IMG/VR virus record: IMGVR_UViG_3300010403_000705
Coordinates: 310,001 to 374,000 of that record
Length of the DNA: 64,000 nucleotides
Direction: 5' to 3' (one strand)
The number at the start of each line of letters is the position of its first letter. The stretch's first letter is position 1. Below the pieces are notes generated by a model. That model worked only from the letters and a program-made list of their open reading frames with translations, did no database searches and was not told the DNA's origin. Shown one piece after another: positions 889-54,557 of this stretch. The position numbers were made by a program, and so were the translations under genes.

Positions 889-2256
889 ATGAAGATTAAA
901 ATTTCTGATTTGATTAGCACGGGACATTCTGCTGTTGTTCAACATAAGAGTGGATATATTGGTCCGACTTATTATTTGAAGCGAAATAGTAATGAACTTT
1001 CTCGCGATTTGTATGCTGATGGATATTTTTTACCGGATGAAAAGTTTATTATCGTCAATGCTTATAGGCAAGGCGAAGTAACGCATATGTCAGTGGCTAA
1101 TTCATATGATTTTAAAGTACGTGGATATTATGTACCTTATGATCAGGAATTTGATCTGTTAGAGAATGATGATCTTAGTTTTGCTTGGGACGAGGTTAGA
1201 AAATCTAATGTGTCAAGATATCTTCATCATGGATTTACTATTGGTTCTGATCCAGAGATTTTTGTTGAGGATCGAAATGGAAATATGATTCCTGCTTTCC
1301 TATTCCTTGGTTCTAAGGAAGAACCCAATCATACTGCGATAGGTGATCATTATGGTTCCGATGGTGGTCATCCTATGTACTGGGATGGTTTTCAAGCAGA
1401 GTTTACCACTCGTGCCGGACATTGCTTGGAGTATCATACAGACTCAGTAGCTGCTGGTATTAAAGGCGTCTATGATGCAGCTAGGAAAAAATTTCCAGAT
1501 GCACGTCTTAGCTGTCGTAATGTTTTTGATATCTCTAATGATATGCTACAAACTGCTAAAGAAGAGCATGTAGCTTTCGGATGTATGCCGAGCTTTAATG
1601 CTTATGGATTGCAGGTGAATATGCCTCCTGCTCGTGAGGTGTCTTTCAGATCTGCTGGCGGTCATATTCATTTTGGTCTAGGTAAAATTACCAATGACTC
1701 TGCTGTCAGTATTGTTAAAGCATTAGATATGATTGTCGGTGTATCCTGTGTTAGTCTTTTCGATAAATTTGATAATCGAAAAAGAAGAATGATGTATGGT
1801 CTTCCTGGAGAGTATCGATTGCCTCCGCATGGATTAGAGTATCGTACACTTTCCAATGCCTGGCTTATTCATCCTTTCATTATGAATCTGGTGATCGATA
1901 TTGCTAGAAAAGCTGTGGTATTGAGCCAACGTGGTTGGCTAGATCTGTGGGTAAGTGACGAAGAAGAAACGATTGATACTATTATGAGATGCGATGTTGA
2001 GCAAGCTCGTAAGTCTTTGGAAACAAATAAAAAGACATTTATCAATCTGCTTAGTGCTTCTTATATATGGGCTTCTCAAATAGATTTAAATATATTATAT
2101 AATATCTTTTTTAATGGTCTAAAGAGTGTCATTCATGATCCAAATGATTTTGTAGGAAATTGGAAAATCAATGGTGGGTGGTTTCGTTTAGCGAGGGCTG
2201 ATAAGTGTAATGTTAGTCGAAGCATGGAAGACCTTCGTATTGGCAATAAGTTATAG
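889..2256 (+). CDS. phiEco32-like COOH-NH2 ligase type 2, paralog 2
   Basis: FTIGSDPEIFV, DGFQAEF, GGHIHFG, GEYRLPPHGLEYRTLSNAWL; about 115-aa variable N-terminal domain. Confidence 0.85.
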   Translation: MKIKISDLISTGHSAVVQHKSGYIGPTYYLKRNSNELSRDLYADGYFLPDEKFIIVNAYRQGEVTHMSVANSYDFKVRGYYVPYDQEFDLLENDDLSFAWDEVRKSNVSRYLHHGFTIGSDPEIFVEDRNGNMIPAFLFLGSKEEPNHTAIGDHYGSDGGHPMYWDGFQAEFTTRAGHCLEYHTDSVAAGIKGVYDAARKKFPDARLSCRNVFDISNDMLQTAKEEHVAFGCMPSFNAYGLQVNMPPAREVSFRSAGGHIHFGLGKITNDSAVSIVKALDMIVGVSCVSLFDKFDNRKRRMMYGLPGEYRLPPHGLEYRTLSNAWLIHPFIMNLVIDIARKAVVLSQRGWLDLWVSDEEETIDTIMRCDVEQARKSLETNKKTFINLLSASYIWASQIDLNILYNIFFNGLKSVIHDPNDFVGNWKINGGWFRLARADKCNVSRSMEDLRIGNKL

Positions 2257-2329
2257 AGTCACCCATCGTATACGATGATAGACTAATAAGGCAAGCAATA
2301 AGTTAACACACAAATTTCAAGGAACGAAA

Positions 2330-3742
2330 ATGAAGATTACTGATATTCGAAATAGTGGACGATCAATGGCGGTGAAAGTAGCGAAGCGTGATGTCTCTGC
2401 CAGATATTATTTGCGGCGAGATGGTACGCCCACTCAGGATGTACAGATTGAACCATATTCTTTTCCATCGGATGTGTTTGGTATTATTGCAACATACGAT
2501 CGTCATGATTATGTAATTGCAAGCATCATTGATTTCTGTAATTCCAGCCGAGCGCCGCGGAACTATTATATTCCACTGGATTTGGAGTTTACAGAGATTA
2601 CTGCTGACGATCCTTTGTACCAAAAATGGGTCACGTATCAAACGCAGCATCTAGAGATCATGTTGCCTCATGATTTCAGTATTGGTTCTGATCCAGAGAT
2701 TTTTGTTGAGGATAAGGATGGTACGCATATTCCAGCTTTCCTATTCCTTGGATCTAAGGAGGCGCCTGATCGTACTCCTTCTTGGGGAGGTTACGATAAT
2801 AATGGTGGATGCACTATGTATTGGGATGGCTTCCAGGCAGAATTCACAACCAAAGCTGGTGGTTGTTTAGAGTATCATACAGACTCAGTAGCGGCTGGAC
2901 TTCGTGGAGTATATGATGCTGCCCGTCAGAAGTTTCCTAATGCCAGACTTAGCTTGAAGAGTGTAGTAGATATTCCCCATAGCATGTTGGAAGAAGCTGA
3001 AGATCAGTATGTAGCTTTCGGATGTATGCCCAGCTTTAATGCTTATGGAATTAGAGTAAACATGCCTCCTGCACGTGAGGTGCCTTTTAGATCTGCAGGT
3101 GGTCATATTCATTTTGGGATTGGTAAGCTTACTCAAGAGCAAGCTACTCCCATCGTCAAGGCGCTGGATGCTATTCTGGGAGTAGCGTGCGTGTCTTTGT
3201 TTGCTAACTATGATAGTCGAAAACGTAGGCATCTGTATGGTCTTCCTGGAGAGTATCGATTGCCTCCGCATGGATTAGAGTATCGACCTCTGAGTAACGC
3301 TTGGTTGTGTCACCCTTTCATCATGAATCTGGTGATTGATGTGGCAAGAAAGGTACTTGTCCTTGGGCAAAAGGGTTTGCTGAATCTGTGGCAAGGAAAT
3401 GAAGAAGAAACCATTGACATCATGATTCGTTCAGATGTAGAAGGTGCTCGTGAATCCTTAAAAAGAAACAAGGAAATCTTCATCAAAATTCTGGAATCTT
3501 GCTATGTTATTTATAATCGTTGGGCAACTCCTCAGGACCTAGAAATGTTCTATGGTATTTTCCTCAATGGATTAGAAACTGCTATCGCAGATCCTAGCAA
3601 TTTTGTCAAGAATTGGTATCTGAATGGCACTTCACGTGATAACTATGATGATAATGGTAGGGCTTGGCGCAAGCAAGCCTCTGGTTTACACGCCAATGTA
3701 AAGCGTAGCATGGATACGCTTCGCGATGGTAAGAAGCTGTAA
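2330..3742 (+). CDS. phiEco32-like COOH-NH2 ligase type 2, paralog 3
   Basis: FSIGSDPEIFV, DGFQAEF, GGHIHFG, GEYRLPPHGLEYRPLSNAWL. Confidence 0.85.
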   Translation: MKITDIRNSGRSMAVKVAKRDVSARYYLRRDGTPTQDVQIEPYSFPSDVFGIIATYDRHDYVIASIIDFCNSSRAPRNYYIPLDLEFTEITADDPLYQKWVTYQTQHLEIMLPHDFSIGSDPEIFVEDKDGTHIPAFLFLGSKEAPDRTPSWGGYDNNGGCTMYWDGFQAEFTTKAGGCLEYHTDSVAAGLRGVYDAARQKFPNARLSLKSVVDIPHSMLEEAEDQYVAFGCMPSFNAYGIRVNMPPAREVPFRSAGGHIHFGIGKLTQEQATPIVKALDAILGVACVSLFANYDSRKRRHLYGLPGEYRLPPHGLEYRPLSNAWLCHPFIMNLVIDVARKVLVLGQKGLLNLWQGNEEETIDIMIRSDVEGARESLKRNKEIFIKILESCYVIYNRWATPQDLEMFYGIFLNGLETAIADPSNFVKNWYLNGTSRDNYDDNGRAWRKQASGLHANVKRSMDTLRDGKKL

Positions 3743-3749
3743 ATCGGTA

Positions 3750-3791
3750 CATGAGGTTATTGGAGGCGTGAATGCCTCCAATAACCTCATG
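3750..3791 (+). terminator. 18-bp stem hairpin after ligase 3
   Basis: CATGAGGTTATTGGAGGC-GTGAAT-GCCTCCAATAACCTCATG followed by GTTTT. Confidence 0.7.
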
Positions 3792-3804
3792 GTTTTAAGA
3801 TAAT

Positions 3805-4827
3805 ATGCTTTCACTCCTGTTTAAGGTAATAGTTATGACGATAAGACCCTGGATGCAGCAATCACAAGGTCAACAAAGATTAAGAATTGCTGAGCCTTCA
3901 CCAACTCCTAAACAAGAAGTTGATACTGAAAAAAGGTTTGCTGGTGATTGGAATAAGGATGATGAGAACGCAGACACACAACCTGGTATTGGAACAACTA
4001 TCATTAAACATTCACCTCAACAGGAGATGAGTAAAGTGTATACCCCCTATAGTTATAAACCTACGCCGTCAGAAACTTCAAACAAAATATTTGTTTATGG
4101 GACGTGCATGACAGGTTTTTCTTTGAATAAAGTAGTAGCTCGCGACGGTTATATTAGTCCGGCGACAACAACCGCTGTTTATCGTATGATTAATATGTAT
4201 GATGAATATCCCACTATTTTAACGGGTGGTCATACTCGTATCATAGGACAACTATATTATACCACTAGGCGAACTTTGGAATTTTTGGATTCGGTTATGG
4301 ATTGTCCGAGCTTACATCATCGTGATATTATCTCCTTAGAAGATGGAACGCGTGCACATGCCTACATTATCAATCGCTGGAAGACTCCTCTTCGAGAAGA
4401 AGAAATTTTATCAGGAGACTGGATTGAATGGAAGAAGAACTCTCGAACACGAGAGAAAGAAAGAAAAGAAAAATTCAAAGCATTGATGGCTCGTGGTAAA
4501 GCAGAAGCTAAAGCTCGCCAACAAGCTATGGCAGACGATGTTATGACTACTGCTAATGATACAAAACTTACCAGTGTAGTCAAACGCTGGGACCCTATTA
4601 GAGGCGAATTCACTTATTCATTGAATACCTCGGAATCTAAAGTGAGCCCGAATGTTAGTGATAAGAGCATCTCTTCTGTAAGAAATGTTCATATCTCTGA
4701 TATTCCATTATCGGATTTAAAAATCAAATTGATTAATGACGGTATTAATCCTGAAGATTTAGAAGAGCATGCCATACGAATTGCATGCATGTCACGCTAT
4801 GGCTTATGGTATCAGATTGAAGATTAG
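3805..4827 (+). CDS. Gamma-glutamylcyclotransferase (AIG2-like) domain protein with N- and C-terminal extensions
   Basis: IFVYGTCMTG...YPTI...IIGQLY...LEFLD...HHR...AHAY...SGDW; catalytic Glu position appears altered (LDSVM vs LDRVE); start may be 3835. Confidence 0.75.
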   Translation: MLSLLFKVIVMTIRPWMQQSQGQQRLRIAEPSPTPKQEVDTEKRFAGDWNKDDENADTQPGIGTTIIKHSPQQEMSKVYTPYSYKPTPSETSNKIFVYGTCMTGFSLNKVVARDGYISPATTTAVYRMINMYDEYPTILTGGHTRIIGQLYYTTRRTLEFLDSVMDCPSLHHRDIISLEDGTRAHAYIINRWKTPLREEEILSGDWIEWKKNSRTREKERKEKFKALMARGKAEAKARQQAMADDVMTTANDTKLTSVVKRWDPIRGEFTYSLNTSESKVSPNVSDKSISSVRNVHISDIPLSDLKIKLINDGINPEDLEEHAIRIACMSRYGLWYQIED

Positions 4828-6550: not shown

Positions 6551-6752
6551 GTACCTTTAGCTTAAAAGACAATACCGACGCATTATAATTCTTTGTATTT
6601 TCTCTGCAAAGAGACGTAGCATTTTAACCTCTCCCTCATAAGAGATAATGTTGAATGGTGACGTACATCGTTGATTATAGACTTCTGGTATTAGGACGAG
6701 CACCCTTCTAACACAAGGGAGGTTGAGGGTTCGAGCCCCTCAAGGTACACCA
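6551..6752 (+). tRNA. tRNA-Val(AAC) with ~125-nt structured insertion in the D-loop
   Basis: Acceptor GTACCTT/AAGGTAC, A73, encoded CCA; D stem GCTT/GAGC; anticodon arm CCCTT-CTAACAC-AAGGG; T arm GAGGG-TTCGAGC-CCCTC; the D-loop spans 6564-6697. Confidence 0.8.
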
Positions 6753-7121: not shown

Positions 7122-7448
7122 ATGGCAACGAAATTTATGTATCTGCGAGCAACACGTGATTCTCAACCTGTGGGATGTATGGCTTTTGATTCGGATGAGC
7201 GTGGTGTTCGATATCAAATTGCAGTTTTGAATCCAGTAGATACTTTTGATCGCACGAGAGGTCGAAGTATCGCAGAAGCGCGTCTACAAAAAAATCCCAT
7301 CAGAGTTGAGTTTCCAGAAGCTAGTGTTGTTGAGCTATCAAACTGGGATGTTCTCAGCACTTTGATGAGTCACCTAGCAGCCAGCAAGAGCGCCCCATCC
7401 CGAGCTGTACGAACTGCTCGCCATTGGCTAATTGCTCATACCAACTAA
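7122..7448 (+). CDS. Hypothetical protein
   Basis: ORF with GAGG RBS; DTFDRTRGRSIA motif of a kind seen in phage proteins. Confidence 0.55.
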   Translation: MATKFMYLRATRDSQPVGCMAFDSDERGVRYQIAVLNPVDTFDRTRGRSIAEARLQKNPIRVEFPEASVVELSNWDVLSTLMSHLAASKSAPSRAVRTARHWLIAHTN

Positions 7449-8015
7449 GATATGAAGAAGTATTTTTTAATTGGTGGCATACCATATAGGTCGTACACTG
7501 GTACTGGCACATTTGTTGGATTAAAAGTTGTTGGTCAGTATGATTCAATTGAAGAAGTAGAGACGGCGGTTAAGCTTCATTATGAAGAGTGTGGAGGTCT
7601 ATTAATGGTATTAGACTCTACTACTGGTCAAGAATTAGTTGAAAATTCTCAGGTATAGAAGAAAGGTTATATTTCATATGTCACATCATGGTGGTAAAGG
7701 ATATCCACATACCGCACAGATTCGGTCAGAGCGCCGCGATCGTGCTATTGCAGTTACCGCAGAAAGCGGGTATAGTAAATTAACGACTGAGGAAAAGTTG
7801 AAGCGAGTTCTTGCTTTTGTTTCCGTGCCTGGTAATGGTAAAGCAGAGAAGCAACTAGCGAAGCTTCAACTTCAATTGAAGAAAGACAAGGAACCAAAAC
7901 CTGTTAAAAACAAAGAAGTAGAAGCGCCGCTAGTAGTGTCTAAAAAGACGGATGATAATCATAACTATCAGGTCGAGCAAGCGTATAATAAGCGCAGTCA
8001 TAAGGTGCGTAAATA

Positions 8016-8282
8016 ATGCTATTCATGATTATTGAAACATTTAAAGGTGGTAACCCAAAACCTGTATATGAGAGATTTAAGCAGCGAGGGCGCCTTGCGC
8101 CTGAAGGCTTAACGTATGTCTCAAGTTGGGTGTCAGATAAGGGTACTGTGTGTTATCAAATCATGGAATGCGCAGACATTAATTTGATTCATCAATGGAT
8201 TGAAAAATGGAATGACCTGGTAGAATTCGAAGTCATCCCAGTAGTAACTTCTATTGAGGCGGCGAAACTTTTTTCTGCCTAG
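8016..8282 (+). CDS. DUF3303-family protein
   Basis: MLFMIIETFK...VYERF...GR..PEGL.YVSSWV...CYQIME...W.DLVEFEVIPV. Confidence 0.8.
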   Translation: MLFMIIETFKGGNPKPVYERFKQRGRLAPEGLTYVSSWVSDKGTVCYQIMECADINLIHQWIEKWNDLVEFEVIPVVTSIEAAKLFSA

Positions 8283-8314
8283 ATATAATAATTTGGCGTC
8301 ACAGCAAATATTCG

Positions 8315-8548
8315 GCAATGCCATTGGGCGAGATGCTGATTGATGGTAATTACTTGGATTATCATCATCTGTGGCTTTGGGCTTTCTGTAACCGTCGATA
8401 CGGGTGAAGAAAGTATGGTAAACCCGCAAGGGACCGATCTGCATAAAAAAGTATAGTGGCGAGGCACGTTGTCGAGAATGTGTCATAAGAGGGTGCACTG
8501 TGCGCATCAGTTATATGACTGGATAATGATGATACCCATTAACATTGC
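8315..8548 (+). ncRNA. Putative structured non-coding RNA upstream of a tRNA-like gene
   Basis: Closing helix GCAATG..TGGG / CCCA..CATTGC; hairpins GATGGTAAT/ATTATCATC, CCC-GCAA-GGG (GNRA), CAGTTA/TGACTG; GC higher than flanks. Confidence 0.45.
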
Positions 8549-8569
8549 TTTTTTAGAGATACCAAGATA

Positions 8570-8761
8570 GCTCCGTTCGCTGAGCGGTGAAAGCTTCGGA
8601 AATATTGATGTATGTGTTTAAGTTCGATTCTGTGTAAGCGTTGATTGAATTCTGTCCAAAGGAATTCATGTCGCTGAATGGGTGGTTGTGGAGGAGAATA
8701 GAGTCGGCGCATCTGATATGTCCGGGGAACTAAGTGCAGAGTTTGATTCTCTGCCGGAGCC
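8570..8761 (+). ncRNA. tRNA-like RNA with a 120-nt structured domain replacing the anticodon loop
   Basis: Acceptor GCTCCG/CGGAGC; D arm GCT-GAGCGGTGAA-AGC; anticodon stem TCGGA(8596-8600)/TCCGG(8721-8725); T arm CAGAG-TTTGATT-CTCTG; ends C-CTA. Confidence 0.7.
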
Positions 8762-9429
8762 CTATTTGCTAAAAGAAATATAACATTTATGCATTTTGAA
8801 TATTTTGATCGTTACGCTTTATGTAAACTTTTCATTGAAAAAGAATCACCACATACATCCTATGAAAATATAGGATTTGTAATTAAAAGAGGTGAGAGTT
8901 TATTTGTAAGTCTAGCTCATGGTAGAAATAAAAATTCATTGGTAAGTTTAAGCGATCCTTCTTTTATTTCTGAAGGAAGGAAATTGGACCATGAAATTAT
9001 CCATGGTTGGGCTGTCCTTGTAAGTTAATGTTAATATGGAACCTACTTTTTGGTGGAACTATGATTTATTTCGAGTATCACAATCTTCAAGAAAACTAAT
9101 AGAGCAAGCAATTCTTGAAGGAACAATGAATTTAACTCACAATGTTAAACCAAAAATTGTGATGAATACATTCGAAGTTCTATATGATGTTGTGGTGCAT
9201 AAGAACGGAAGTCATCCTGGTTGGGTGAGTATCTCTTTGTTTAGATGTATGGAATGTAAATTATTCCTTAATCAACTTAAATGTTGGAGATGTTCTCAAA
9301 CTTCCCATCAATCTCACTCTTAATCATGGTATACATGTAAGACATGCAATAGTGATTCTAGCAAAATTCTGGCACGTATCGAATCAAATAATGACTCCTA
9401 AATTCGTGTGGTGGTCGCCCACGACGATA

Positions 9430-9582
9430 TGTGCCAAGAGCTACATAAAGTTTCTAAGCCGTGTGGGTTCGAATCCCACTCTATACTAGTGTGGTATAGA
9501 TGGCAGGAAAAATAAAAGGGAGACGCTAAGATCATGGTGATCTTTGGTACGAAACTGATGTAGCATATTAGGGAGAGGCACA
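9430..9582 (+). ncRNA. Circularly permuted tRNA-like RNA (Y RNA/YrlA-like architecture)
   Basis: Order is T arm (GTGGG-TTCGAAT-CCCAC), acceptor stem closed by a loop (TCTATAC-TAGTGTG-GTATAGA), D arm, anticodon-like hairpin; 5' and 3' ends pair (TGTGCC/GGCACA, GCTACAT/ATGTAGC, GTTTC/GAAAC, GCC/GGT). Confidence 0.75.
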
Positions 9583-9770
9583 ATGAATCATTATCACTTT
9601 GCTTCTCCCAAAATTTTATATAATAATTTATGATTAAATTATTACTGTATTTGATTGGTAGAAGTCCTATACTATCTTCATTGTGGATAACAGTATATTT
9701 TTTTCTACTAAAATTGCGCAGGAAAAACCGGATTCGATCAAAACGTGAATCCTTTACCAAGAATAAACAA

Positions 9771-10397
9771 ATGAGTAAATATCCTATTAGATATCTTCCT
9801 GTTCCAGTCCGCGAAGCATTTACCCATAAGTTGTTAGGTGATGGTTACGTTAATATTTTACCTTATCAAGTAAAAATTCGTGGAGAAAAAGTATATACCT
9901 ATTATTCTCCGCCTAAAAATAATTGTACTACTTTTGTAGTAGAAGTAAATTTAGAAACAAAAGAATGTATAGTTCACACAGGTGAATATGGCGGGCAATA
10001 CGCTGAGCGTCTTCCAGATCGAGATAAAAAACAGCGTCCACTTGATAAAGGAAAAGCTATTATTAAGGGATATGTAGTTTCTAGTGGAAGAGCGTCCAAT
10101 TATCTTGCAGATGTGGAAGTATTATTTCATCCATCTCAAACTTTGAAACCTCTTCCAGAAGTAAAAATTGATGAAAGAGAGCGTCGGATTTTGTTTTGTT
10201 TTGGATCTCTGAAAGAAGGATTAGCCAGGCGTGAAGCTCTTCATCGTTTAAATGTATCTAAACCAGAACTTGAAGTTCTAGTCAATAGAGGTCTACTGAA
10301 GAAGATTGGTAATAGTCATGGTTTGACTATGATTGCTGAAGCAAATCGTCTTCCTCGCCCTGTCCACGGCGAAAAAGTAATTGTTGATCAATGGTAA
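9771..10397 (+). CDS. Hypothetical protein, paralog of downstream ORF, possible C-terminal winged helix
   Basis: KYPIRYLP...YTYY...HP...DERERRILFCFGSLKEG aligned by eye with the 10437 ORF; ATG at 9771 preferred. Confidence 0.6.
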   Translation: MSKYPIRYLPVPVREAFTHKLLGDGYVNILPYQVKIRGEKVYTYYSPPKNNCTTFVVEVNLETKECIVHTGEYGGQYAERLPDRDKKQRPLDKGKAIIKGYVVSSGRASNYLADVEVLFHPSQTLKPLPEVKIDERERRILFCFGSLKEGLARREALHRLNVSKPELEVLVNRGLLKKIGNSHGLTMIAEANRLPRPVHGEKVIVDQW

Positions 10398-10436: not shown

Positions 10437-11093
10437 ATGAAATATCCTATTCTTAGACTGCCCAAGCCAATTGCAGCCGCTCTTGAGTCAGAAATGCTGC
10501 GACGTCGTTATCATATACCTCATACTATCTCGGTCACTCCCAGCACCTCATACACTTATTATATGAAAGGTAGATCCAATAAAATTGGATGTGTGATTGA
10601 AGTATCTTTGCTTCTAAAGAAAAAAATAGATCCTACTGTACAACAAGGTCGTTTGCAATTTGAGAAAAGAGGATATGTTTTGGATTATATGCCTCTGTGG
10701 GGAGGATGGAATGGAGATATATCCTCTCATATTGGAGCAGTTAATTCAGACAAAACTATACGTATTTTGAATCCTGGAAATGCGGTTATTAAGTGTTACG
10801 TTGATAACCAAACACTATTTGCGGGAGGTGAAGTAATATTGCATCCTACAGATATGCCGCCGGCAATCTCAGAAGTTAGATTGTCAGATCGTGAACGTCT
10901 TATTGTGTTTATTTTTGGCAAACTAAAAGCAGGACCTGAGAGATTTTTAACTTTAGAAAAATTTAAAGTTTCTCAAGAAGAAATCAATAATTTAGTCAAA
11001 AGAAAAGTTATCAAACCTACTAAAAATGGATATGTAATCACTGTTACAGGTTTGGCTGCTCGATCTGATAATCCTAAAATAGATAGATGGTAA
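10437..11093 (+). CDS. Hypothetical protein, paralog of upstream ORF
   Basis: KYPILRLP...YTYY...HP...SDRERLIVFIFGKLKAG; both end D-x-W. Confidence 0.6.
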   Translation: MKYPILRLPKPIAAALESEMLRRRYHIPHTISVTPSTSYTYYMKGRSNKIGCVIEVSLLLKKKIDPTVQQGRLQFEKRGYVLDYMPLWGGWNGDISSHIGAVNSDKTIRILNPGNAVIKCYVDNQTLFAGGEVILHPTDMPPAISEVRLSDRERLIVFIFGKLKAGPERFLTLEKFKVSQEEINNLVKRKVIKPTKNGYVITVTGLAARSDNPKIDRW

Positions 11094-11952
11094 TATTATA
11101 TGAAGCGTATTTTAATGATAGATGATACTTATCGCAACCTAGTAGATGCGTTGGTAGAATTAGAGGTTCTATTAACCATCGAAAAATCTTCAGATGATAA
11201 AGTAAAAAGACTACTTTCCATAATTAAGTTAGCACAAGATGTTAATGTTATAGAACAAGGATAAGATCATGTCTGATAATGCTAAGCAAGATCCTCGTAC
11301 GACACATTTATTACCGCCCGCAAATCTTCATGTATCCGATCGTGATTGGTATTCATCACCTGCACCCACCCCATCATTGAGCGGTCCTCCTACAGTACAG
11401 TCTAGTAAATCTTCTACAAGCTATCTAGCTGCTTATGGAAATAATTATCGTAGCTATAATTCATTAGTTAACCAAAACTATTGGAGTAGATATATAGGTA
11501 TTTTTACAAAGGATGGTAAGAGTAAATTCGGGAAGATTATTACTCAACTTTCATTAGAAGATTGGGCAAAAGAAAATGGATATACCATCGTCAAATTTAC
11601 TAGACTTTTTGGTTCTATAAATCCTGAGAAAGAAAAGACAGAATTTAGTACCGGAACTTCTATGGACGATGTATGAAGTCAACAATTGATGATAGTGATA
11701 TAGGGACATATTCAACTCCACAAGAGTGGCTCGAATTATATAAGGGCACTGCTCCAGAATGTGCTCAAATGGCAACTTGGTTAGCTATCGAAATGGCGGG
11801 ACGACACATTCAATTAAAAATGGATCATGGTTTAGATTCCAGTGAATGGTCTTTATATTGCCAGGTCCTACCATCAATTCCAGGTCTTAAGACAGATCCG
11901 AACAGGAAAGAAATTCCTCGTCTTGTTAAAAGATATTTATCGGAGTATTAAG

Positions 11953-13251: not shown

Positions 13252-13559
13252 TTGGTGGCAGGTATTAGTTATTGTAAAGATGTTGGCATATGTAAACTAT
13301 AGCGCCGGCATTAAGCAATATGTTCGTGCGGTAACATACAGAAATTCTCTAGCTTTGAGAAAAACAATATAGTTACATTTAGCAGCCAGTAAACTCATGA
13401 CTTAGTTTATCAGTAATGCTAAGTGTTTAATCTAGGAGATGAAAGGGTATTTCTGTCTAGTCATATGTAAGAAGAAATGAGTCCAAAATAAAATACGTTG
13501 CATCAATTGAGATGATGATATTTAATATCATGCAGGTGCGATATTTGCCAACGTACCAA
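13252..13559 (+). ncRNA. Putative structured non-coding RNA abutting a tRNA-like gene
   Basis: ORF-free; closing helix TTGGT-GGCAGGTAT / ATATTTGCC..ACCAA; internal stems ATGTAA..CTATA/TATAGTTACAT, TATGTT/AACATA, TTCTC/GAGAA, TAAACT/AGTTTA. Confidence 0.45.
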
Positions 13560-13561
13560 AT

Positions 13562-13651
13562 GCCGAATTAGTACAATGAAAATGTCTATGCGCAAAGACT
13601 AAGTACGCCACTCATAAAGCGGTAATTTGGGTTTGATTCCCGAGTTCGGCT
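13562..13651 (+). tRNA. Aberrant tRNA-like gene with expanded D-loop; anticodon ambiguous (CTCATAA present, possibly Met/Ile2-derived)
   Basis: Acceptor GCCGAAT/GTTCGGC; D stem GTAC/GTAC with 28-nt loop containing a GTCT/AGAC hairpin; imperfect anticodon stem; T arm TTGGG-TTTGATT-CCCGA; ends T-CTA. Confidence 0.6.
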
Positions 13652-16859: not shown

Positions 16860-17365
16860 TATGTGGTTTGCAATAATTTATGTTATTGGTATGGGTGGTG
16901 GGTTTATTCTTGCTGCTATCAAGAAAGGTAAGTGGTGGGCAGAAAAATCCGGTGAGGATAATTTGTTACCCTACAAAGATATATTTGGCGACGATTCTTA
17001 TAGTAAGAGCGAATACATACCAGTAATGATGGTGTTGTTATGGTGGCTAGCGTTTATAGTATTGCTGGTAACTTGTTTAGTAAAAGCACTATTATTTTGC
17101 TCGGATAAACTAGTCATCGCTATAGAATACGCCAGTGAACGAATTGCAAATTTTAAAGTAAATAAAAAGAAAATTCATTCAGTTATTCGGGAAGGTTATC
17201 GAACTCCGGGAGCTAAGCCTTGTGTTGCTTGTGGCGCTCACACCAGCAACATGCAAGAATAATTAGATTAATAGATCATATTACTATTCATCAAGTTTCA
17301 TACAACCCATCAGCAAAAGTTGATTGAACATTTAACGATTCTAAATAATAGAAAGATAAAAATTT

Positions 17366-18309: not shown

Positions 18310-19293
18310 ATGGATAGGCGTGAATATAATGTTGTTTGTAGATTCTCTAATGGTCGTCTTCATAATGAACTATGGACGTTTGAAGGACTAGAAGATAAAA
18401 GTACACAAGCAATAAGAGAATGTCTATCCATCTATGAAAAATATGATCCTCAAGATGTTCCTATTGTCTTAGGTGTAGAATGCCTTCCAAGCAGGGATTT
18501 AAATATTGATTTTCAACTTCTAAAAGATATGTCATATATCCGATCAATTTGTGATTTGGGTAGAAAAATTAGAGCTACTAATAATCTAGCAGTTAGACAG
18601 CCATTAAGTGTAGGTTATGTATATTTTTCAGATTATGCTACACGCTCTAGTTGTCAGTCTAGAAGATATATAAGAGAAATGGGTGATCTTATTGAAAAAG
18701 AATTGAACATTAATGAAATCATTTTTATTAATGATGTAGGTGATAATTCTTTATTTGATGTCATCTTAAAACCAAATTTCCGATCTTTGGGTCCTAAAGG
18801 ATATGGTAAATTAGCACAACCCGTAAAAAAGTTAATGGAACAACTTCCAACGTTTATGAGTAATAGTTTATATGAAAGACTATTACTAGGACCTATTAAT
18901 GACTTTGGTTTTCCTATTTCTCTAGAAGATGTAGAAGTAGGTCTCAAACCTAAGGAAGGCTTAAAATCATTGTCCAATGATTGTGGTGCTATCATTCTGG
19001 ATACTAGAATCTCTCCTCTCATGAAAAGAAAAGGATTGGTTTATAATGTGAAATCTTGCATTCAACAATGTAGGCGTGCTTTAAATCTTGACCTACAAGA
19101 TTATGTGAATATGACTTTATATTCTAGAGACGCAGATCTTGTATTTGGTGTAGAAGAATTCTCACATTTCCTTAAAAATGAATGTTTAATTGATGTTTTA
19201 AATTGTTATGATCAACCAAATGTTTTAAATTTAATGGATGATTCAAGTTCTTTTGTTTTTGATACATTCTGCATTCATATGAAAAGGATTTAA
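18310..19293 (+). CDS. Stand-alone C-terminal region of type-2 isoleucyl-tRNA synthetase (no catalytic domain)
   Basis: LGRKIR...AVRQPL, ELNINEI, LKPNFRSLGPK.YGK, LDT.I...G....S.IQ..RR..L...D; no HIGH or KMSKS. Confidence 0.75.
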   Translation: MDRREYNVVCRFSNGRLHNELWTFEGLEDKSTQAIRECLSIYEKYDPQDVPIVLGVECLPSRDLNIDFQLLKDMSYIRSICDLGRKIRATNNLAVRQPLSVGYVYFSDYATRSSCQSRRYIREMGDLIEKELNINEIIFINDVGDNSLFDVILKPNFRSLGPKGYGKLAQPVKKLMEQLPTFMSNSLYERLLLGPINDFGFPISLEDVEVGLKPKEGLKSLSNDCGAIILDTRISPLMKRKGLVYNVKSCIQQCRRALNLDLQDYVNMTLYSRDADLVFGVEEFSHFLKNECLIDVLNCYDQPNVLNLMDDSSSFVFDTFCIHMKRI

Positions 19294-20005: not shown

Positions 20006-20321
20006 ATAGATATTATTTAATGTTGAAAGTATAACAAAAATGTCTTACGATAAGAAAGAATTAGAATTTCAACCACCCCCATACGATAACACATATCAAA
20101 AACCAAGGTATTTTAAAATTGAAATTTTGGTAGAAGTTCCCTGCGAAGATAAAGATTCTGCTTCCATGAATCATCTCAATTGGTCATCTGGATGTGATGA
20201 GACCTATGCAATGCTTTGTCATGTTACTGATAATGATCATTTACTTGATTATCAAGAAGTAAGCGGGGAATTTTATCATAGACATAAATACGATATTATT
20301 GATGAAGAAGGTGGATTATAA

Positions 20322-20552
20322 ATGACATGTGTAACTCTTGTCTGTAAAGAATGCGGGCACACCGCTCGCCGCCCCTTGATGTCCGAGTCGGGCTCTAGAG
20401 GCATCCACGAGACTTCTAGCGAGCCCGCCCTGTGCCCGTGGGGTCATGGCTTGCTAGCCAGACAAGATGGCTTACGGCAGGAGCGTTGGGCGTCGTGGGC
20501 GCGAGTTGGACATGAGTTTAAGAAGAAACTAATAAGAATTAATGGATTGTAA
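20322..20552 (+). CDS. Small Zn-ribbon-like protein on a GC-rich patch
   Basis: CKECGH...CPWGH; DNA markedly more GC-rich than flanks. Confidence 0.5.
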   Translation: MTCVTLVCKECGHTARRPLMSESGSRGIHETSSEPALCPWGHGLLARQDGLRQERWASWARVGHEFKKKLIRINGL

Positions 20553-22674: not shown

Positions 22675-23664
22675 ATGCCCGTAATTAATTGGACTGAAAT
22701 TACATCTTTTCATAACATTAACAAATATGCTAAAAGCGTTCCAGAGATACTTAACCATTATCCATCGGTAATGTATCGGGCTAAAATTAAGCTACATGGC
22801 AATAATGCGGCAATTCAAATTCATTCTGATGATCGCGTTTTGGCTCAAAGTAGAACTACAGAGCTTAGCCCAGGTAATGATTTAGCTGGATTTGCGAAAT
22901 GGGTAGAAGAAAATGCAAGTGCCTGGCGTAATAATGCTTCAGGTCTTATTGTATTTGGTGAGTGGTGTGGGCATGGTATCCAAAGTGGAACAGCTCTCAA
23001 TAACTTACATGAAAAGATTTTTGCTGTTTTTGCTGCACGATGGTTAGATGACGAGGATTCTCTAATCGTAGATCCAGAAGAATTACAAGAGCTTCTTAAA
23101 GGAAAAGACATTCCTGGAATGTATATACTTCCATGGCACAATGATCCAATTGAAATAGACTGGTGCGGCAATGAAAGCTCATTAGATGTTAAGGCTTCGT
23201 TAATTAATGAATGGGTGTTAGCTATTGAACAAAATGATCCCTGGGTAGAGAAGACCTTTAACATTAAAGGTACTGGAGAGGGATTGGTATTCTACCCTAT
23301 ATCTAAACAACACTTGGGTTATAAGAATTATTGTAATTTAGTTTTTAAAGCCAAAGGTGAGGCTCATCGCGTTGTTAAGACTAAGACATCTGTACAGGTA
23401 AATCCAGAAGCTGTGGAAAATAGCAATTTATTTGTAGATATGGTTCTTACCACAGCTCGATTAGAGCAAGGTGTACGTTCTGCTAGTGTAGATGGATCGC
23501 TAACATTTAGTAATAAATTTATTGGAAAATTTATAAATTGGATTCTAAATGATGTGCAAAAAGAAACAACAGCAGAACTAGAAGCCTCTGGATTGCAGTG
23601 GAAACAAGTACAAAAATTACTAGGAGATAAGTCACGTAATTGGTATCTAAGTAAAATGAAATGA
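22675..23664 (+). CDS. RNA ligase, Rnl2 family
   Basis: Motif I KLHGNN, QSR, FGEWCG.GIQ, FAVF, GEGLV, FKAK. Confidence 0.8.
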   Translation: MPVINWTEITSFHNINKYAKSVPEILNHYPSVMYRAKIKLHGNNAAIQIHSDDRVLAQSRTTELSPGNDLAGFAKWVEENASAWRNNASGLIVFGEWCGHGIQSGTALNNLHEKIFAVFAARWLDDEDSLIVDPEELQELLKGKDIPGMYILPWHNDPIEIDWCGNESSLDVKASLINEWVLAIEQNDPWVEKTFNIKGTGEGLVFYPISKQHLGYKNYCNLVFKAKGEAHRVVKTKTSVQVNPEAVENSNLFVDMVLTTARLEQGVRSASVDGSLTFSNKFIGKFINWILNDVQKETTAELEASGLQWKQVQKLLGDKSRNWYLSKMK

Positions 23665-29604: not shown

Positions 29605-31686
29605 ATGGATGAAGAAGAGAATGATTTAGTAAATGACGCAGAGCCAGTACAACCCATCGAACCACTAGATGTAGGAGCGGATGTTCCAGTAATAGCTCCA
29701 GTGCCAATACCACCACCACCACCTCTTCCTCAACCTCGTCCTGTTCCTTTTATTAATAATTATGAAAGGATTAGACCACAAGCGATTTGGATGGAAGATG
29801 AACCCCGTAATGACTACTGGGAATATGAAAACCAACAGGCTCGTGAGGAGGATTTTAGGGTAAGGTTGCAACGTTATAGACAGGTCGCCGCCGCCGGCGT
29901 CGCGCCGTGGCTTAATAGAGATTGGGAAATTTGGTCGCAACAGAACGTGGGCGCAGCTCACCCAGTACCTAATCCTCATATTCCGGTGCCCAGAAACCCA
30001 AATATAAATCAATTTATAAACCAAATTATTAATAATGAGGAAATAAGAGAGCGTCACATGAATTATGATCAGTTGGTAAGAAGATATCCATCATTGGTAG
30101 ACAGGTATCTTCCTGATTTATCCAATAAGGCTAATGCTTTGAGTGCATTACGAAGTATTGAATCTGATAGAAATGCAACTCTAGAAGAGAAAACGGCACT
30201 TCGTGATTATGTAGGCAATCACGAAGTAGCATCTGTTTATAACTATCAGTGGTGTGTTGACTGCGAATCAATGGTAGGGCATCCTAATCATACACATTGT
30301 CCACATTGTATTTATCCATGTACTGTTGTTGAGCCGGGTCATGTTAATCCTCCATCCAATACTCAGTTAGCAGTATGTGGATTTTGTGGAGAATGTTGTC
30401 GTAGTAAAGGTCATAGATACTGTCCTACTTGCAATACTCACAGTGATAGATTATGTCGACATTGCAGTAAATGTACTGCTTGCTGTGCTTGTCAACTTTG
30501 TCCCGCACGAGGTTGTCAAGAGATGCAAGAATGTAATGATTGTTGTAATTGTCTCGATCATTGTACCTGTCCAGCACTACAATCTAATGGTACATATGGT
30601 AAATCTTTTCCAGCTTTCAAAAAGAAAGAGCGTCGACTGTTTGATTGCCAACGTCTAGCTGGTGTAGAGTGGGAGTACAATCGATTATCTACACAAAGAT
30701 ATTTCGACCATTGGGTAAAGAAGTGGTTAGCGGATCGGCACCAAGATGATTCATGCGGTTATGAAGCCGTTACAGCTCCCATCGCTGGCGACTACATGGT
30801 CAAATGTATAGAGGCTTTGGGAAAAGTTTTTGAAAAGAGTAAGGCGTCAATTGATAATCGATGTTCAATTCATGTACATGCAGATGCAAAAGACCTTCAG
30901 TGGTCAGATATGTTCAGACTGTTGAAAGTCTATTCGATTGTAGAACCTGTTCTTTATATGTTAGCAGGGCAAGAACGCCTCGATAATAGATATTGTGTGC
31001 CCTGTGGTAAAGATTATGCTGCTGCTCTTGAAAGGATTGATCGTAAAGATGCAGTCATGGCTGTAGCATTTACTCCCATTACACGTGATGGAAGAAAAAG
31101 TGAAGTCAATCTTATTCCTGATAATGGTCGCAATTCACAGCGTGCCAAACCAGGAAAACGTGCCGATAATCATGCGTATTGTCGACGCAAAGGATTGAAC
31201 ATTCTTCCTTGGTTGGCTGGTCGAGGACCTCGACCAAACACTCCAGTTAGCATCGTAACTCAAGCCAATGATACAATTGAAAAAATTGCGCAACGCAATA
31301 ATGTTTCAATTGCGGCATTGATGCGTTGGAATAAGATTAAACCTGGTACGCGTTTTGCGGCTGGACAAAGACTTATCGTCAATAAGCGTATTGTGGCACC
31401 TGATACTACAGTGGAGTTTAGAATTCACCCTAACACACATGATGCTAATCGTGTTATTAATTGGGTGAAAGTTATACTGCGTTTGGTTGATTGGGCAGCT
31501 AAATCAACTGATAACGATTTAGAGAAACTTCCTAAGTCAGCCCTTAGGATTCTCTGTCAAGTCATTGCACCCGAATGTGCTCCTTGGATCATGTCGAGAG
31601 TGCAAGAGTGGCGTAAGGAAACATCAAAAATCAATGGACGTCACGAGCGTCGCATTAGCCTAAAGGGCGGAAAGTACAGTTACTAA
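29605..31686 (+). CDS. Putative amidoligase (Amidoligase_2/GCS-like) with Pro-rich N-terminus, Cys-rich region and inserted LysM domain
   Basis: GVEWE, DDSCGYEAVTAP, CSIHVH, TVEFR; LysM-like TQANDTIEKIAQRNNVSIAALMRWNKI...GQRLIV; many CxxC. Confidence 0.8.
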   Translation: MDEEENDLVNDAEPVQPIEPLDVGADVPVIAPVPIPPPPPLPQPRPVPFINNYERIRPQAIWMEDEPRNDYWEYENQQAREEDFRVRLQRYRQVAAAGVAPWLNRDWEIWSQQNVGAAHPVPNPHIPVPRNPNINQFINQIINNEEIRERHMNYDQLVRRYPSLVDRYLPDLSNKANALSALRSIESDRNATLEEKTALRDYVGNHEVASVYNYQWCVDCESMVGHPNHTHCPHCIYPCTVVEPGHVNPPSNTQLAVCGFCGECCRSKGHRYCPTCNTHSDRLCRHCSKCTACCACQLCPARGCQEMQECNDCCNCLDHCTCPALQSNGTYGKSFPAFKKKERRLFDCQRLAGVEWEYNRLSTQRYFDHWVKKWLADRHQDDSCGYEAVTAPIAGDYMVKCIEALGKVFEKSKASIDNRCSIHVHADAKDLQWSDMFRLLKVYSIVEPVLYMLAGQERLDNRYCVPCGKDYAAALERIDRKDAVMAVAFTPITRDGRKSEVNLIPDNGRNSQRAKPGKRADNHAYCRRKGLNILPWLAGRGPRPNTPVSIVTQANDTIEKIAQRNNVSIAALMRWNKIKPGTRFAAGQRLIVNKRIVAPDTTVEFRIHPNTHDANRVINWVKVILRLVDWAAKSTDNDLEKLPKSALRILCQVIAPECAPWIMSRVQEWRKETSKINGRHERRISLKGGKYSY

Positions 31687-31687
31687 T

Positions 31688-32674
31688 ATGTGTGGACTGA
31701 GTGGTTTTATTGGATTGCCGTTATCTAAAGATGAAAAGCTGATGCTTGTTTTAGGTCTCGGCGATGGCATCGACAATCGTGGTGGACATAGTTGTGGATA
31801 TGTCAGCGTTGCTGAGGATGGTAATCTTCAGTATGCCAGAAAAAAAGGCACATGGATTCGTGCTCGTATTAGATTTACTGAGGGCGCTGCTTCTGAAGTA
31901 TGTATGATGCATGCTCGTTGGGCAACTTGTGGTAATAAAGAGGATCCAATGAATGCGCATCCGTTTTCTATTCGACGTAATGGACGTGTAGTTATGTGGG
32001 GCGCACATAACGGTATGGTTCCTGATGCTTTTAAGAGTGCTAAGGCACATGGTCGCGATATCAATGTAGATTCTCAAGAAATTTTTGAGCTTCTTGCTGA
32101 TAAGAATTACGAAGGCATTCGAGAGATGTCTGGCTATGGTGTGATTACTTGGATTGATACTGATCATCGTGATTATGTTAATCTCGCCAGGCTTTCATCT
32201 CATTCCGATATTTGCGTAGTCAGTGTCAAGGGTGGTGGTGTAGTCTGGGCATCTACTTGGAAAATTCTTAAGGAAGCTCTTAAGTTAGCTGATCTAGAAG
32301 TGGATCGTGAGTTTAAGATTGACGAAATCGGTCGAGTATATCGTATTCGAGCTGATGGTGTCTTCAAAACCAAACTAGATGGTATCAAAGTTGGAACCTA
32401 TAATAAGTTGACCAAAACACAAACCACCGTTGGTTCTACGACAACTGTAGATACACCTTCAGTGCCATCTGACGAGATAGATGAAACACTTATTGTAGAA
32501 ACAAAAGTGCCAGGAGAATCAGAATATAAATATGCTTCCTCTTATGGTACTGGAGCCTCTTCAACTGTTACGAATGGCTCTGGAGTTTATTCCCCTGCCT
32601 TTTCTGCATGGCAAGGCAAGCAAGGCAATGTAGATGATGAAGAAGCGTATCGTCAATGGTGTGGGTCTGAATAA
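31688..32674 (+). CDS. Class II (Ntn) glutamine amidotransferase, paralog B
   Basis: MCGL, NRGGHS.G, HARWAT.G, NAHPF, AHNG, VDS. Confidence 0.85.
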   Translation: MCGLSGFIGLPLSKDEKLMLVLGLGDGIDNRGGHSCGYVSVAEDGNLQYARKKGTWIRARIRFTEGAASEVCMMHARWATCGNKEDPMNAHPFSIRRNGRVVMWGAHNGMVPDAFKSAKAHGRDINVDSQEIFELLADKNYEGIREMSGYGVITWIDTDHRDYVNLARLSSHSDICVVSVKGGGVVWASTWKILKEALKLADLEVDREFKIDEIGRVYRIRADGVFKTKLDGIKVGTYNKLTKTQTTVGSTTTVDTPSVPSDEIDETLIVETKVPGESEYKYASSYGTGASSTVTNGSGVYSPAFSAWQGKQGNVDDEEAYRQWCGSE

Positions 32675-52562: not shown

Positions 52563-52644
52563 GGGCGTGTGGGTTGATTACAAATTGGCATAGTATACGG
52601 ACTTAAAATCCGCACCTTTGAGGGTTCGAATCCCTCCATGCCTA
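52563..52644 (+). tRNA. Atypical tRNA-Leu(TAA)
   Basis: Acceptor GGGCGTG/CATGCCT, A73; D arm TAC-AAATTGGCATA-GTA; loop CTTAAAA; T arm GAGGG-TTCGAAT-CCCTC; about 7 extra nt before the D stem; short variable region. Confidence 0.7.
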
Positions 52645-53021
52645 CCTGATAATGGTAAAGACAAGAAAGTAATGTTTCAATGTAAGCATAGTAAGACTGG
52701 TCCTTGTTATGAGTGTGTGAGCGAAAAAAATCATTATGCGGATCTCAATGCTGAGAAAAAGCAGAGAGAAGATGAACAAGAATATTATCGAAGTTGTTGC
52801 GATAGTTCACAAATTATGCATTATGAAATTAATAGAGCTGGTCGCCTTGCTTGCGGTTATTCTTGGGACGAGGTACGTAAACATAATGAGAAATTTACCA
52901 GCGATTCTTTTATATTTGAAGATCGAGTTCGCAGTAAAATAGCTTGTGAACAATGTGCAAAATATTTTCTTAAATTGAAAAAAAGGATATGATAGCTCAA
53001 TAAACTATCAATTTAATAAAA

Positions 53022-54557
53022 ATGTCTAAAATAGAATGGACAATAGATCGAAAAAATGATTCCTGTTGCCGGATTAATAATTCTCTAGGTATAGATATTG
53101 ATCTTTTTGCAAATGATGATGTGGTTATTGATAGAGATGCCTTTCAAGAACTTTTTGATTTCTTAGATGTGCAACGCGCAATTTCTGATATTTCTTCTGC
53201 AGAAAAATCAGGAAATTTTTCTTTTTTTGGAAACCCTAATGCTGGAATTACTAAAGTTGTTTTAACTCCTGATTTTCACAAAGGCTCTGGTATTCCTATT
53301 GGAACAGTGGTGGAGAATAATGGTTTTGTTATTCCAGCAGCCATTGGAAATGATATTTGTTGTGGAATGAGATTATTAGTAACAGATATGCCAGTAACTA
53401 AATTAGAAAATCATTGGGGAACTATTCAAAAACGTTTGAGAGAAATCTTCTTTCAAGGACAACGAAACATTCCTATGTCTCCACGACAAAGAGAATCTGT
53501 TCTTCGTTATGGGTTACCAGGATTATTAGAAACCATTAAAGACAATGAAAATACAGGTATTTATCAACATTTTAATGTTAAAAATCAAATAGCTGATCTA
53601 GCCAGAGCTCATAATAATGGTGGATTTAATACCGACAGATTGTTTGGTTTTGATAAGTTGATACGCAGTTCTGGAGCCATTGACGGTAGAGATCCACAAA
53701 TTGGTTCAGTAGGCGGTGGTAATCATTTTGTAGAGTTTCAAAAAATCGAAGAAATTTTGTGTAAACAAACTGCCAGAGAAATGAATATTAACAGTGGTAA
53801 CCTAGCTATTATGATTCATTCTGGATCTGTTAGTTTAGGACACGCAGTTGGCTGGCATTTTATTGATCGTGCAAGAGAACTCTTTCCGTCTCAAATAAAA
53901 AGTCCAAAAAATAATTTCTTTGTTCTACCTACAGTTGGACCATATGCTAAAGAAGGCAAATTTTATCTAAATAGTATGAGAAATGCAGCGAATTTTGCTT
54001 TTGCTAATAGGTTATTTTTAGGTCTTATGGCGATCAAAGCCGTACAAGAAGCAATTGGTTGTTATGTAGATTCCAGACTTATTTATGACGCTCCTCATAA
54101 TTTAGTTTTTGAAAAGAATGATGGTCAATTTATACACCGTAAAGGCGCTACACCCGCAGAAGGTCCAGACAAAGTAGACCAATGGATTGGAAAACCAGTT
54201 ATTATTCCTGGGTCAATGGGCAGTGCTAGTTATTTGCTAACTGGATTAGGCAATCCAGAAGCCTTAGAAAGCGCATGTCACGGTGCAGGACGATTAATGC
54301 CTCGCGGAGTAGCCTCTCATGTAGATGATAAGATTTTTGATGATCAGACATGTGATTTGCGTATTGTGACTGCTGTAGATCCAAAATCGCCTCAAATGCA
54401 AATGAGAAAAGATATTATGATTAAATATAAAGAGAGAGTTAAAGAAGAAGCACCTTATGCTTATAAACCAATTACACCAATTATTCGATCTATTGAAGAT
54501 GCACACATTGCTAGAGTAGTAGCTAAGCTAATGCCATTGTGCACGGTAAAAGGATAG
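53022..54557 (+). CDS. rtcB: RtcB family RNA ligase
   Basis: PDFHKG.GIPIG, GNDICCG, GSVGGGNHFVE, HSGS, HN, HRKGA, PGSMG, HGAGR, EEAP.AYK. Confidence 0.95.
   Translation: MSKIEWTIDRKNDSCCRINNSLGIDIDLFANDDVVIDRDAFQELFDFLDVQRAISDISSAEKSGNFSFFGNPNAGITKVVLTPDFHKGSGIPIGTVVENNGFVIPAAIGNDICCGMRLLVTDMPVTKLENHWGTIQKRLREIFFQGQRNIPMSPRQRESVLRYGLPGLLETIKDNENTGIYQHFNVKNQIADLARAHNNGGFNTDRLFGFDKLIRSSGAIDGRDPQIGSVGGGNHFVEFQKIEEILCKQTAREMNINSGNLAIMIHSGSVSLGHAVGWHFIDRARELFPSQIKSPKNNFFVLPTVGPYAKEGKFYLNSMRNAANFAFANRLFLGLMAIKAVQEAIGCYVDSRLIYDAPHNLVFEKNDGQFIHRKGATPAEGPDKVDQWIGKPVIIPGSMGSASYLLTGLGNPEALESACHGAGRLMPRGVASHVDDKIFDDQTCDLRIVTAVDPKSPQMQMRKDIMIKYKERVKEEAPYAYKPITPIIRSIEDAHIARVVAKLMPLCTVKG

Follow-up and report, generated by a model that had tools for sequence, protein, structure and literature searches.

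The window analysed here is a 64,000-nt stretch of the IMG/VR virus record IMGVR_UViG_3300010403_000705 (positions 310,001 to 374,000), part of a huge-phage genome. An exact 31-nt probe from the element hits a single IMG/VR contig of 432,844 bp, from which the fetched stretch is identical to the window, and a 447,633-bp metagenome contig from a soil sample is also identical over 8 kb. Open reading frames in the window are small, closely packed and nearly all on the + strand, and profile searches return phage-like hits: two COOH-NH2 ligases, a gamma-glutamyl cyclotransferase, an amidoligase, a glutamine amidotransferase, PRPP synthetase, RtcB and an RNA ligase. ARAGORN at default settings and Rfam find only two tRNA-Leu(UAA) genes, although the genome holds several aberrant tRNA-like genes, some with inserts. 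At 8570-8763 (+), where neither program reports anything, the sequence folds into a tRNA-like acceptor/T-arm body whose anticodon-position stem runs into about 120 nt of further helices. Directly upstream, starting just after the stop codon of the preceding gene, lies a second conserved non-coding block.

On the single sequence the support for this element is weak. The minimum-free-energy fold keeps the acceptor, the T arm and the long helix, but its z-score is only -1.9, and ARAGORN reports the element only with introns allowed and the threshold lowered to 80-90%, a level at which about ten other weak calls appear in the window. The argument therefore has to rest on comparison. A protein search with the neighbouring ligase gave a syntenic 452-kb viral contig (L003), in which nhmmer found a full-length match at 17148-17330 with the gene order preserved around it. 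The conserved 108-aa protein just upstream of the element led to a Logan contig (L035) with the same gene order and a third copy at 11252-11457 (E = 2.8e-17). A further contig from another sample (L038) carries a copy that scores identically to that of L003. L003/L038 and L035 thus give two independent homologues at the syntenic site. The three distinct RNAs are 53-65% identical, and tRNA and tRNA-like genes flank the locus in all three phages, including a neighbouring tRNA-Val-like gene with an insert in its D loop.

Wider searches added no members. The covariance model built from the three sequences (R1) found no further copies in the window or in nine related loci, and none was found in more distant relatives carrying the same protein family (L004, L036, L039-L041, L043, L044) or in IMG/VR. 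A BLAST search of a phage collection gave no match, three pattern scans of viral contigs gave only the two known contigs and one chance hit, and a scan of the genome collection gave one chance hit in a Saprospira MAG. A metagenome scan returned the source contig plus 26 chance hits, but its pattern required GGTGAAA, which L035 lacks, and could have missed L035-like members.

Table 1. Features of the locus in window coordinates (+ strand for the RNA elements), with their state in the three homologues (window, L003, L035)
Feature	Position	Paired with	Observations
Preceding conserved protein	7122-7448		108 aa
Upstream structured domain	8293-8569		Conserved in all three phages; may be part of the same transcript or the same RNA
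P0 (upstream domain)	8300-8304	8369-8373	
Linker with CUUUGG (upstream domain)	8374-8382		
Pa (upstream domain)	8382-8387	8408-8413	Encloses hairpin 8392-8403; CUUUCU/AGAAAG, UUUCCC/GGGAAG, CUUGGA/UCCAAG
GNRA hairpin (upstream domain)	8423-8432		CCC-GCAA-GGG, UUC-GUAA-GAA, UCC-GUGA-GGA
Pd (upstream domain)	8467-8473	8522-8528	7 bp, encloses a variable insert; compensatory changes
Acceptor stem, 5' strand	8570-8575	8755-8760	6 bp; three of six pairs change on both sides, all cells paired
U8576	8576		Unpaired, invariant
Hairpin H1	8577-8587		4 bp plus YGA triloop, in place of the D arm; UCGC/GCGG, CCAC/GUGG, UCUC/GAGA; two pairs change on both sides
J1	8588-8595		Single-stranded, with invariant UGAAA
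P2, anticodon-position stem	8596-8600	8721-8725	5 bp, UCGGA/UCCGG in the window; 5' strand of P2 and extension (8596-8611) contains invariant UUGA
Extension of P2	8602-8611	8709-8713 and 8715-8719	Five pairs change on both sides (helix 3); conserved U-G pair and bulged U8714 kept in all three
J2	8612-8623		Variable; 5 nt in L003, 19 nt with its own hairpin in L035
P3	8624-8633	8698-8707	UCGAUUCUGU/AUAGAGUCGG in the window; 8-10 bp in all three, different sequence at nearly every position
Distal hairpin	8637-8675		P4, an internal loop, H3 and the terminal loop
P4	8637-8640	8672-8675	AGCG/CGCU in the window
H3	8646-8652	8662-8668	UGAAUUC/GAAUUCA in the window, AGAACCA/UGGUUCU in L003, 9 bp with one bulge in L035
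Terminal loop	8653-8661		9 nt
Heptaloop GUCCAAA	8654-8660		Central seven bases of the terminal loop; invariant
J6, G-rich strand	8676-8697		Conserved, single-stranded, 19-22 nt, four G-runs; long side of an asymmetric internal loop between P4 and P3
Variable-region analogue	8726-8735		Contains invariant ACUAAGU; invariant run ACTAAGTGC at 8729-8737
T arm	8736-8754		6-bp stem, loop UUURAYU; four of six pairs change on both sides (helix 7)
Acceptor 3' strand and tail	8755-8763	8570-8575 (8755-8760)	Tail N-C-U; no CCA encoded; discriminator C, G, G
RNA ligase	22675-23664		
RtcB	53022-54557		

Cutting the three sequences into corresponding segments revealed one common structure (Table 1), in which every proposed pair is standard in the window and in L035, and all but three are standard in L003. 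A covariance model built on the MAFFT alignment was then used to re-align the sequences. On this alignment 89.2% of pair cells form standard pairs, against 37-46% when partners are slid by 1-3 columns, and 20 pairs change on both sides against 3-8 in the slid controls, while none of 500 shuffles reaches the observed values. With only three distinct sequences, however, the covariation cannot be given a formal significance. P3, H3 and the T stem differ at most positions between the phages yet stay paired, and conserved G-U pairs place the RNA on the + strand. In contrast to the variable helices, the unpaired motifs UGAAA, UUGA, GUCCAAA and ACUAAGUGC are invariant, which is the pattern of a functional RNA and not of a spacer or a protein-spliced intron.

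The observation that prompted this analysis, an earlier note describing a tRNA body whose anticodon loop is replaced by a structured domain, is confirmed. All the helices listed there are present, and comparison with the homologues supports most of them, together with the lack of a usable anticodon at the junction and the absence of G3-U70 (the pair is U-A, U-A and A-U in the three homologues). Some details needed correction. The D stem proposed in the note, GCU/AGC, exists only in the window (L003 has ACC opposite AUC), and the element conserved in its place is H1 followed by UGAAA. The inner helices, taken as branches in the note, are nested one inside the other to form a single long arm of about 37 bp, and the acceptor and T stems are 6 + 6 bp, not 7 + 5. 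The note also missed the tip of the arm, where the invariant loop has U at its second position, then CCA, then two purines, as in an anticodon loop; tRNA-Trp of Escherichia coli has CUCCAAA. The description 'anticodon-less' is therefore true only at the normal position.

The interpretation offered in the note is partly supported. A tRNA mimic without an anticodon at the normal place is supported, and the resemblance to tmRNA holds for topology only; a protein-spliced intron and a true tmRNA-like messenger are not supported, while the decoy idea remains a hypothesis. ARAGORN, with introns allowed and at its lowered threshold, calls a tRNA-Ile with a 111-nt intron, removing 8602-8712 and leaving the loop CUGAUAU (8713-8719) with anticodon GAU. 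The same positions read CUGACAU in L003 and CUGGUAU in L035, so that three orthologues would carry GAU, GAC and GGU and decode Ile, Val and Thr. The changed bases are matched by changes on the opposite strand (A-U, G-C and A-U at one pair, and U-A, U-A and U-G at the next), and are therefore helix, not anticodon. On inspection the junction helix is continuous, with one mismatch and one bulged U, and shows no paired 3-nt bulges 4 bp apart as in a bulge-helix-bulge motif. The Rfam group I model (RF00028) gives no hit here, whereas it detects at 52.6 bits a genuine group I intron splitting a tRNA in a related 462-kb phage (L043), which serves as a positive control. Without the insert the body would still lack a normal D arm, and its 6 + 6 acceptor/T stack, long variable region and T loop UUURAYU, with U at the C56 position, do not fit Ile, Val or Thr tRNAs. 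A canonical tRNA has a 7-bp acceptor plus a 5-bp T stem, a D arm with a 3-4 bp stem and a 7-11 nt loop, and a T loop UUCRANY. The insert itself holds the most conserved unpaired motifs of the whole RNA.

No known family accounts for the element. Rfam searches at gathering thresholds and at E<=10, on the window and on small sub-ranges, found nothing on the element or on the upstream domain, including the tRNA, tmRNA, group I, GOLLD and ROOL models, and the ARAGORN tmRNA search gave no hit. No reading frame is shared by the three homologues, as the small ORFs in the insert and across the 3' half are not conserved. A box C/D (K-turn) reading of UUGA/CUGA and of the upstream AUGAUG, which would call for conserved C (RUGAUGA) and D (CUGA) boxes with a terminal stem, was also rejected: CUGA is kept at 8713-8716 in the window and in L003 but reads CUGG in L035, the C-like box at 8605-8611 is not kept in L003 or L035, and the upstream AUGAUG lies in helix Pd. 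A T-box-like covariation between the discriminator base and the base after UGG, judged by eye, fits only two of the three homologues.

The upstream domain, 200-280 nt in the three phages, has stops in all frames and no 3-nt periodicity of differences, and shows compensatory changes in Pa, in the GNRA hairpin and in Pd. In the window, its linker CUUUGGGC is complementary to the invariant loop and ACCCAUU is complementary to the start of the G-rich strand. Both sites rank first in the whole upstream block there, but not in L003 or L035, and are retained only as weak candidates. The first UGG of the G-rich strand could also pair with the CCA of the loop in all three phages, although only 0-3 nt connect it to P4, making this pairing sterically unlikely within one molecule. 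Downstream there is no terminator-like site, the next ORFs are not homologous between the phages, and in L003 the next ORF begins 8 nt after the RNA. The RNA is therefore probably cut out of a longer transcript and is not a leader for one particular gene.

We consider it somewhat more likely than not that 8570-8763 is a gene for a stand-alone structured non-coding RNA of a small clade of huge phages, a tRNA mimic that keeps its insert; in the part of this reading that concerns a functional tRNA mimic retaining its insert our confidence is considerably higher. What the comparison demonstrates is the conserved fold, namely a tRNA-like top half made of the acceptor stacked on the T arm, with a mini-hairpin and UGAAA in place of the D arm, fused through the anticodon-position stem to one long irregular arm that carries the invariant loop at its tip and the G-rich strand in an internal loop. 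Everything beyond the fold is inferred from sequence and by analogy with tRNA-like modules, including transcription, the RNA ends, retention of the insert, processing and function. In this view the RNA is transcribed within a polycistronic phage message, and its body would be recognised by the tRNA-processing enzymes (RNase P at G8570, a 3' endonuclease such as RNase Z, and CCA addition), which would cut it out and stabilise it. UGAAA may play the part of the D loop at the elbow, as the U at the C56 position of the T loop would fit an A partner. The arm would be the working part, presenting the loop and the G-rich strand, which recalls G-quadruplex aptamers, to a partner such as a tRNA-binding or tRNA-cleaving protein (decoy or sponge), another RNA, or the upstream domain. 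Aminoacylation seems unlikely, because the acceptor pairs and the discriminator vary. The only sequencing run holding the sequence is the source DNA, which shows one identical contig with no joined form.

Other explanations are possible but less likely. The best of them, still doubtful, is that the element is the 3' domain of one larger ornate phage RNA of about 405-475 nt (window about 8293-8763), in which the tRNA-like part is a structural or processing module. This would resemble the large GOLLD and ROOL RNAs, which sit in or near phage tRNA islands, may multimerise through loop contacts and, in the case of GOLLD, sometimes have tRNAs in the linker (bioRxiv 10.1101/2024.12.08.627333). The conserved upstream domain, which directly abuts the tRNA-like part, and the pairings that rank first in the window favour this reading. 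On the other hand, these pairings do not rank first in the other two phages, an AU-rich, poorly conserved spacer of 25-35 nt separates the two domains, a tRNA-like 5' end would be expected to be cut by RNase P, separating the two parts, and there is no GOLLD or ROOL match. A real tRNA gene whose intron is removed by phage or host proteins, with an endonuclease cutting and the encoded RtcB or RNA ligase rejoining the halves, is unlikely in view of the evidence above, and is kept alive only by the presence of these two enzymes, by the other tRNA-like genes with inserts and by the absence of RNA data; the low-threshold ARAGORN call and the group I tRNA intron of L043 also speak for it.

Less probable still is a tmRNA-like RNA that is aminoacylated and enters the ribosomal A site with a helper protein while the long arm stays outside. 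Huge phages carry translation-related genes and tmRNAs, and the topology is alike, but there is no G3-U70, no conserved discriminator or reading frame, no pseudoknot series and no model hit, and no SmpB-like gene was seen among the proteins scanned, which cover only part of the genome. A new small self-cleaving or self-splicing ribozyme, formed by the insert alone or with the upstream domain, could be suggested by the invariant unpaired nucleotides in a loop and an internal loop, the possible CCA:UGG pairing and the ribozyme-type tRNA introns of the clade. It is very unlikely given the lack of any Rfam ribozyme match, the steric difficulty of the pairing and the lack of an exon context that would give a functional tRNA after removal. 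A decaying tRNA pseudogene with a chance insertion could be argued from the weak single-sequence signals and the several aberrant tRNA-like genes, but is all but excluded, since three lineages that keep every helix through compensatory changes, and the same unpaired motifs, are incompatible with neutral decay.

We place the element among the tRNA-like structured RNAs; no family in Rfam 15 matches it and literature searches found no description of such an RNA. Compared with tmRNA, which occurs in phages as well as in bacteria and likewise has an acceptor stem stacked on a T arm, no normal D arm and, in place of the anticodon arm, a long helix leading into a large internal domain, it is about 190 nt instead of 260-400 nt and keeps the anticodon-position stem and a variable-region analogue. 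Like intron-bearing tRNA genes (group I in bacteria and phages, bulge-helix-bulge type in archaea and eukaryotes), it has about 110-120 extra nucleotides at the anticodon arm, but its insert is conserved in structure and motifs, no conserved anticodon follows removal and the body is not a canonical tRNA. GOLLD and ROOL are likewise phage-encoded, highly structured and of unknown function, but are larger and do not match in sequence or structure. TRNA-like processing and stability modules, such as mascRNA at the MALAT1 3' end, the tRNA-miRNA chimeras of the herpesvirus MHV68 and engineered tRNA scaffolds, also join a tRNA-shaped module to a non-tRNA RNA and could recruit RNase P, 3' processing and CCA addition. 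In tRNA scaffolds the payload replaces the anticodon loop, exactly as here, but these examples are eukaryotic, eukaryotic-viral or man-made, and no natural phage example with this architecture is in Rfam 15. The bacterial Y RNA-like YrlA is a tRNA mimic encoded near rsr and rtcB, and this genome also encodes RtcB; in YrlA, however, the RNA ends lie at the stem opposite the tRNA-like module, a permuted topology, and we found no Rfam YrlA hit on the element and no Ro/Rsr gene in the scanned part.

A more speculative and rather unlikely possibility is a new class of phage tRNA mimic that uses a genuine tRNA elbow and acceptor end to enter the host's tRNA pathways (processing, perhaps charging, perhaps tRNA-directed defence nucleases or the ribosome), while holding an invariant tRNA-Trp-like anticodon loop about 100 Angstrom further out than in a tRNA. 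In that form it could act, for example, as a decoy that traps anticodon-directed nucleases or other tRNA-recognising factors, or alternatively be a module of an ornate RNA of about 450 nt that assembles through its invariant loop and G-rich strand.

Default tRNA finders and Rfam miss a set of aberrant tRNA-like genes in these genomes, and phage tRNA islands are usually read as codon-usage helpers. This locus shows that a clade of huge phages keeps, under clear structural selection, a predicted RNA that borrows the tRNA top half but, as read here, cannot decode. If it belongs to a larger ornate RNA, it would add a third kind to the GOLLD/ROOL group. If it is a decoy or a scaffold, it would be a natural counterpart of the engineered tRNA scaffold, and a new player in the conflict between phages and host factors that target tRNAs.

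In all three phages, the window phage and the related phage contigs L003 and L035, a tRNA-Val(AAC)-like gene lies at the same syntenic place and carries an insert of about 88-170 nt inside the D loop. In the window and in L003 the gene is otherwise canonical, with a 7-bp acceptor, A73, an encoded CCA, a perfect anticodon arm and a perfect T arm, whereas in L035 the anticodon arm looks degenerate. The gene covaries in the acceptor, anticodon and T stems. The insert sequences, in contrast, cannot be aligned with one another and give no group I hit. The insert could be an intron at an unusual position or a tolerated expansion. A bona fide group I intron was found in a related huge phage (L043), where it splits a class-II tRNA with a perfect 7-bp acceptor (Rfam RF00028, 52.6 bits against a gathering score of 50).

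Further aberrant tRNA-like genes lie in intergenic gaps and are missed at default settings. Each has a good T arm and a matching acceptor strand, while the D or anticodon regions are enlarged or odd. The region is a ‘non-canonical tRNA island’. The T loop of the element at 13562-13650, TTTGATT, is the same as that of the long-armed tRNA-like RNA. The conserved G-rich strand of the latter has four runs of at least two Gs in all three homologues and resembles the core of the Mango aptamer; judged from sequence alone, a two-layer G-quadruplex is possible.

Coordinates of additional features in the window and in related phage contigs
Feature	Window	L003	L035	L043 (NCBI GCA_902731525.1, 462-kb contig)
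tRNA-Val(AAC)-like gene with D-loop insert	6551-6752	13360-13514	8260-8487	
Aberrant tRNA-like genes	9329-9486, 13562-13650, 52569-52645	18581-18680, 20280-20376	11630-11718	
tRNA split by group I intron				7523-7847
Conserved G-rich strand	8676-8697			
RtcB	53022-54557			
RNA ligase domain protein	22675-23664			
ORF with probable internal start, and associated stretch	9630-10397 and 9324-9767			
Paralogue of that protein	10437-11093			
Amidoligase-type gene cluster	889-4827, 29605-32674			
108-aa protein of unknown function	7122-7448			

Among the protein-coding genes, the window encodes RtcB (Pfam E = 3e-90) and an RNA ligase domain protein. The tRNA-like element at 52569-52645 sits just upstream of RtcB, which resembles the bacterial arrangement of tRNA-like Y RNAs next to rtcB. 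The listed ORF at 9630-10397 probably starts at an internal Met near 9768, as homology to the L035 protein begins at residue 42 and the upstream part overlaps non-coding tRNA-like sequence; the protein has a paralogue and no Pfam match. A cluster of amidoligase-type genes comprises two COOH-NH2 ligases, a gamma-glutamyl cyclotransferase, Amidoligase_2 with LysM, and a glutamine amidotransferase, and sets like this are linked to DNA base hypermodification in other phages. Finally, the 108-aa protein has at least 167 relatives in public metagenomes, many of them on contigs of 200-480 kb, and is therefore a marker of a wide huge-phage group, although only the closest relatives carry the long-armed tRNA-like RNA downstream.
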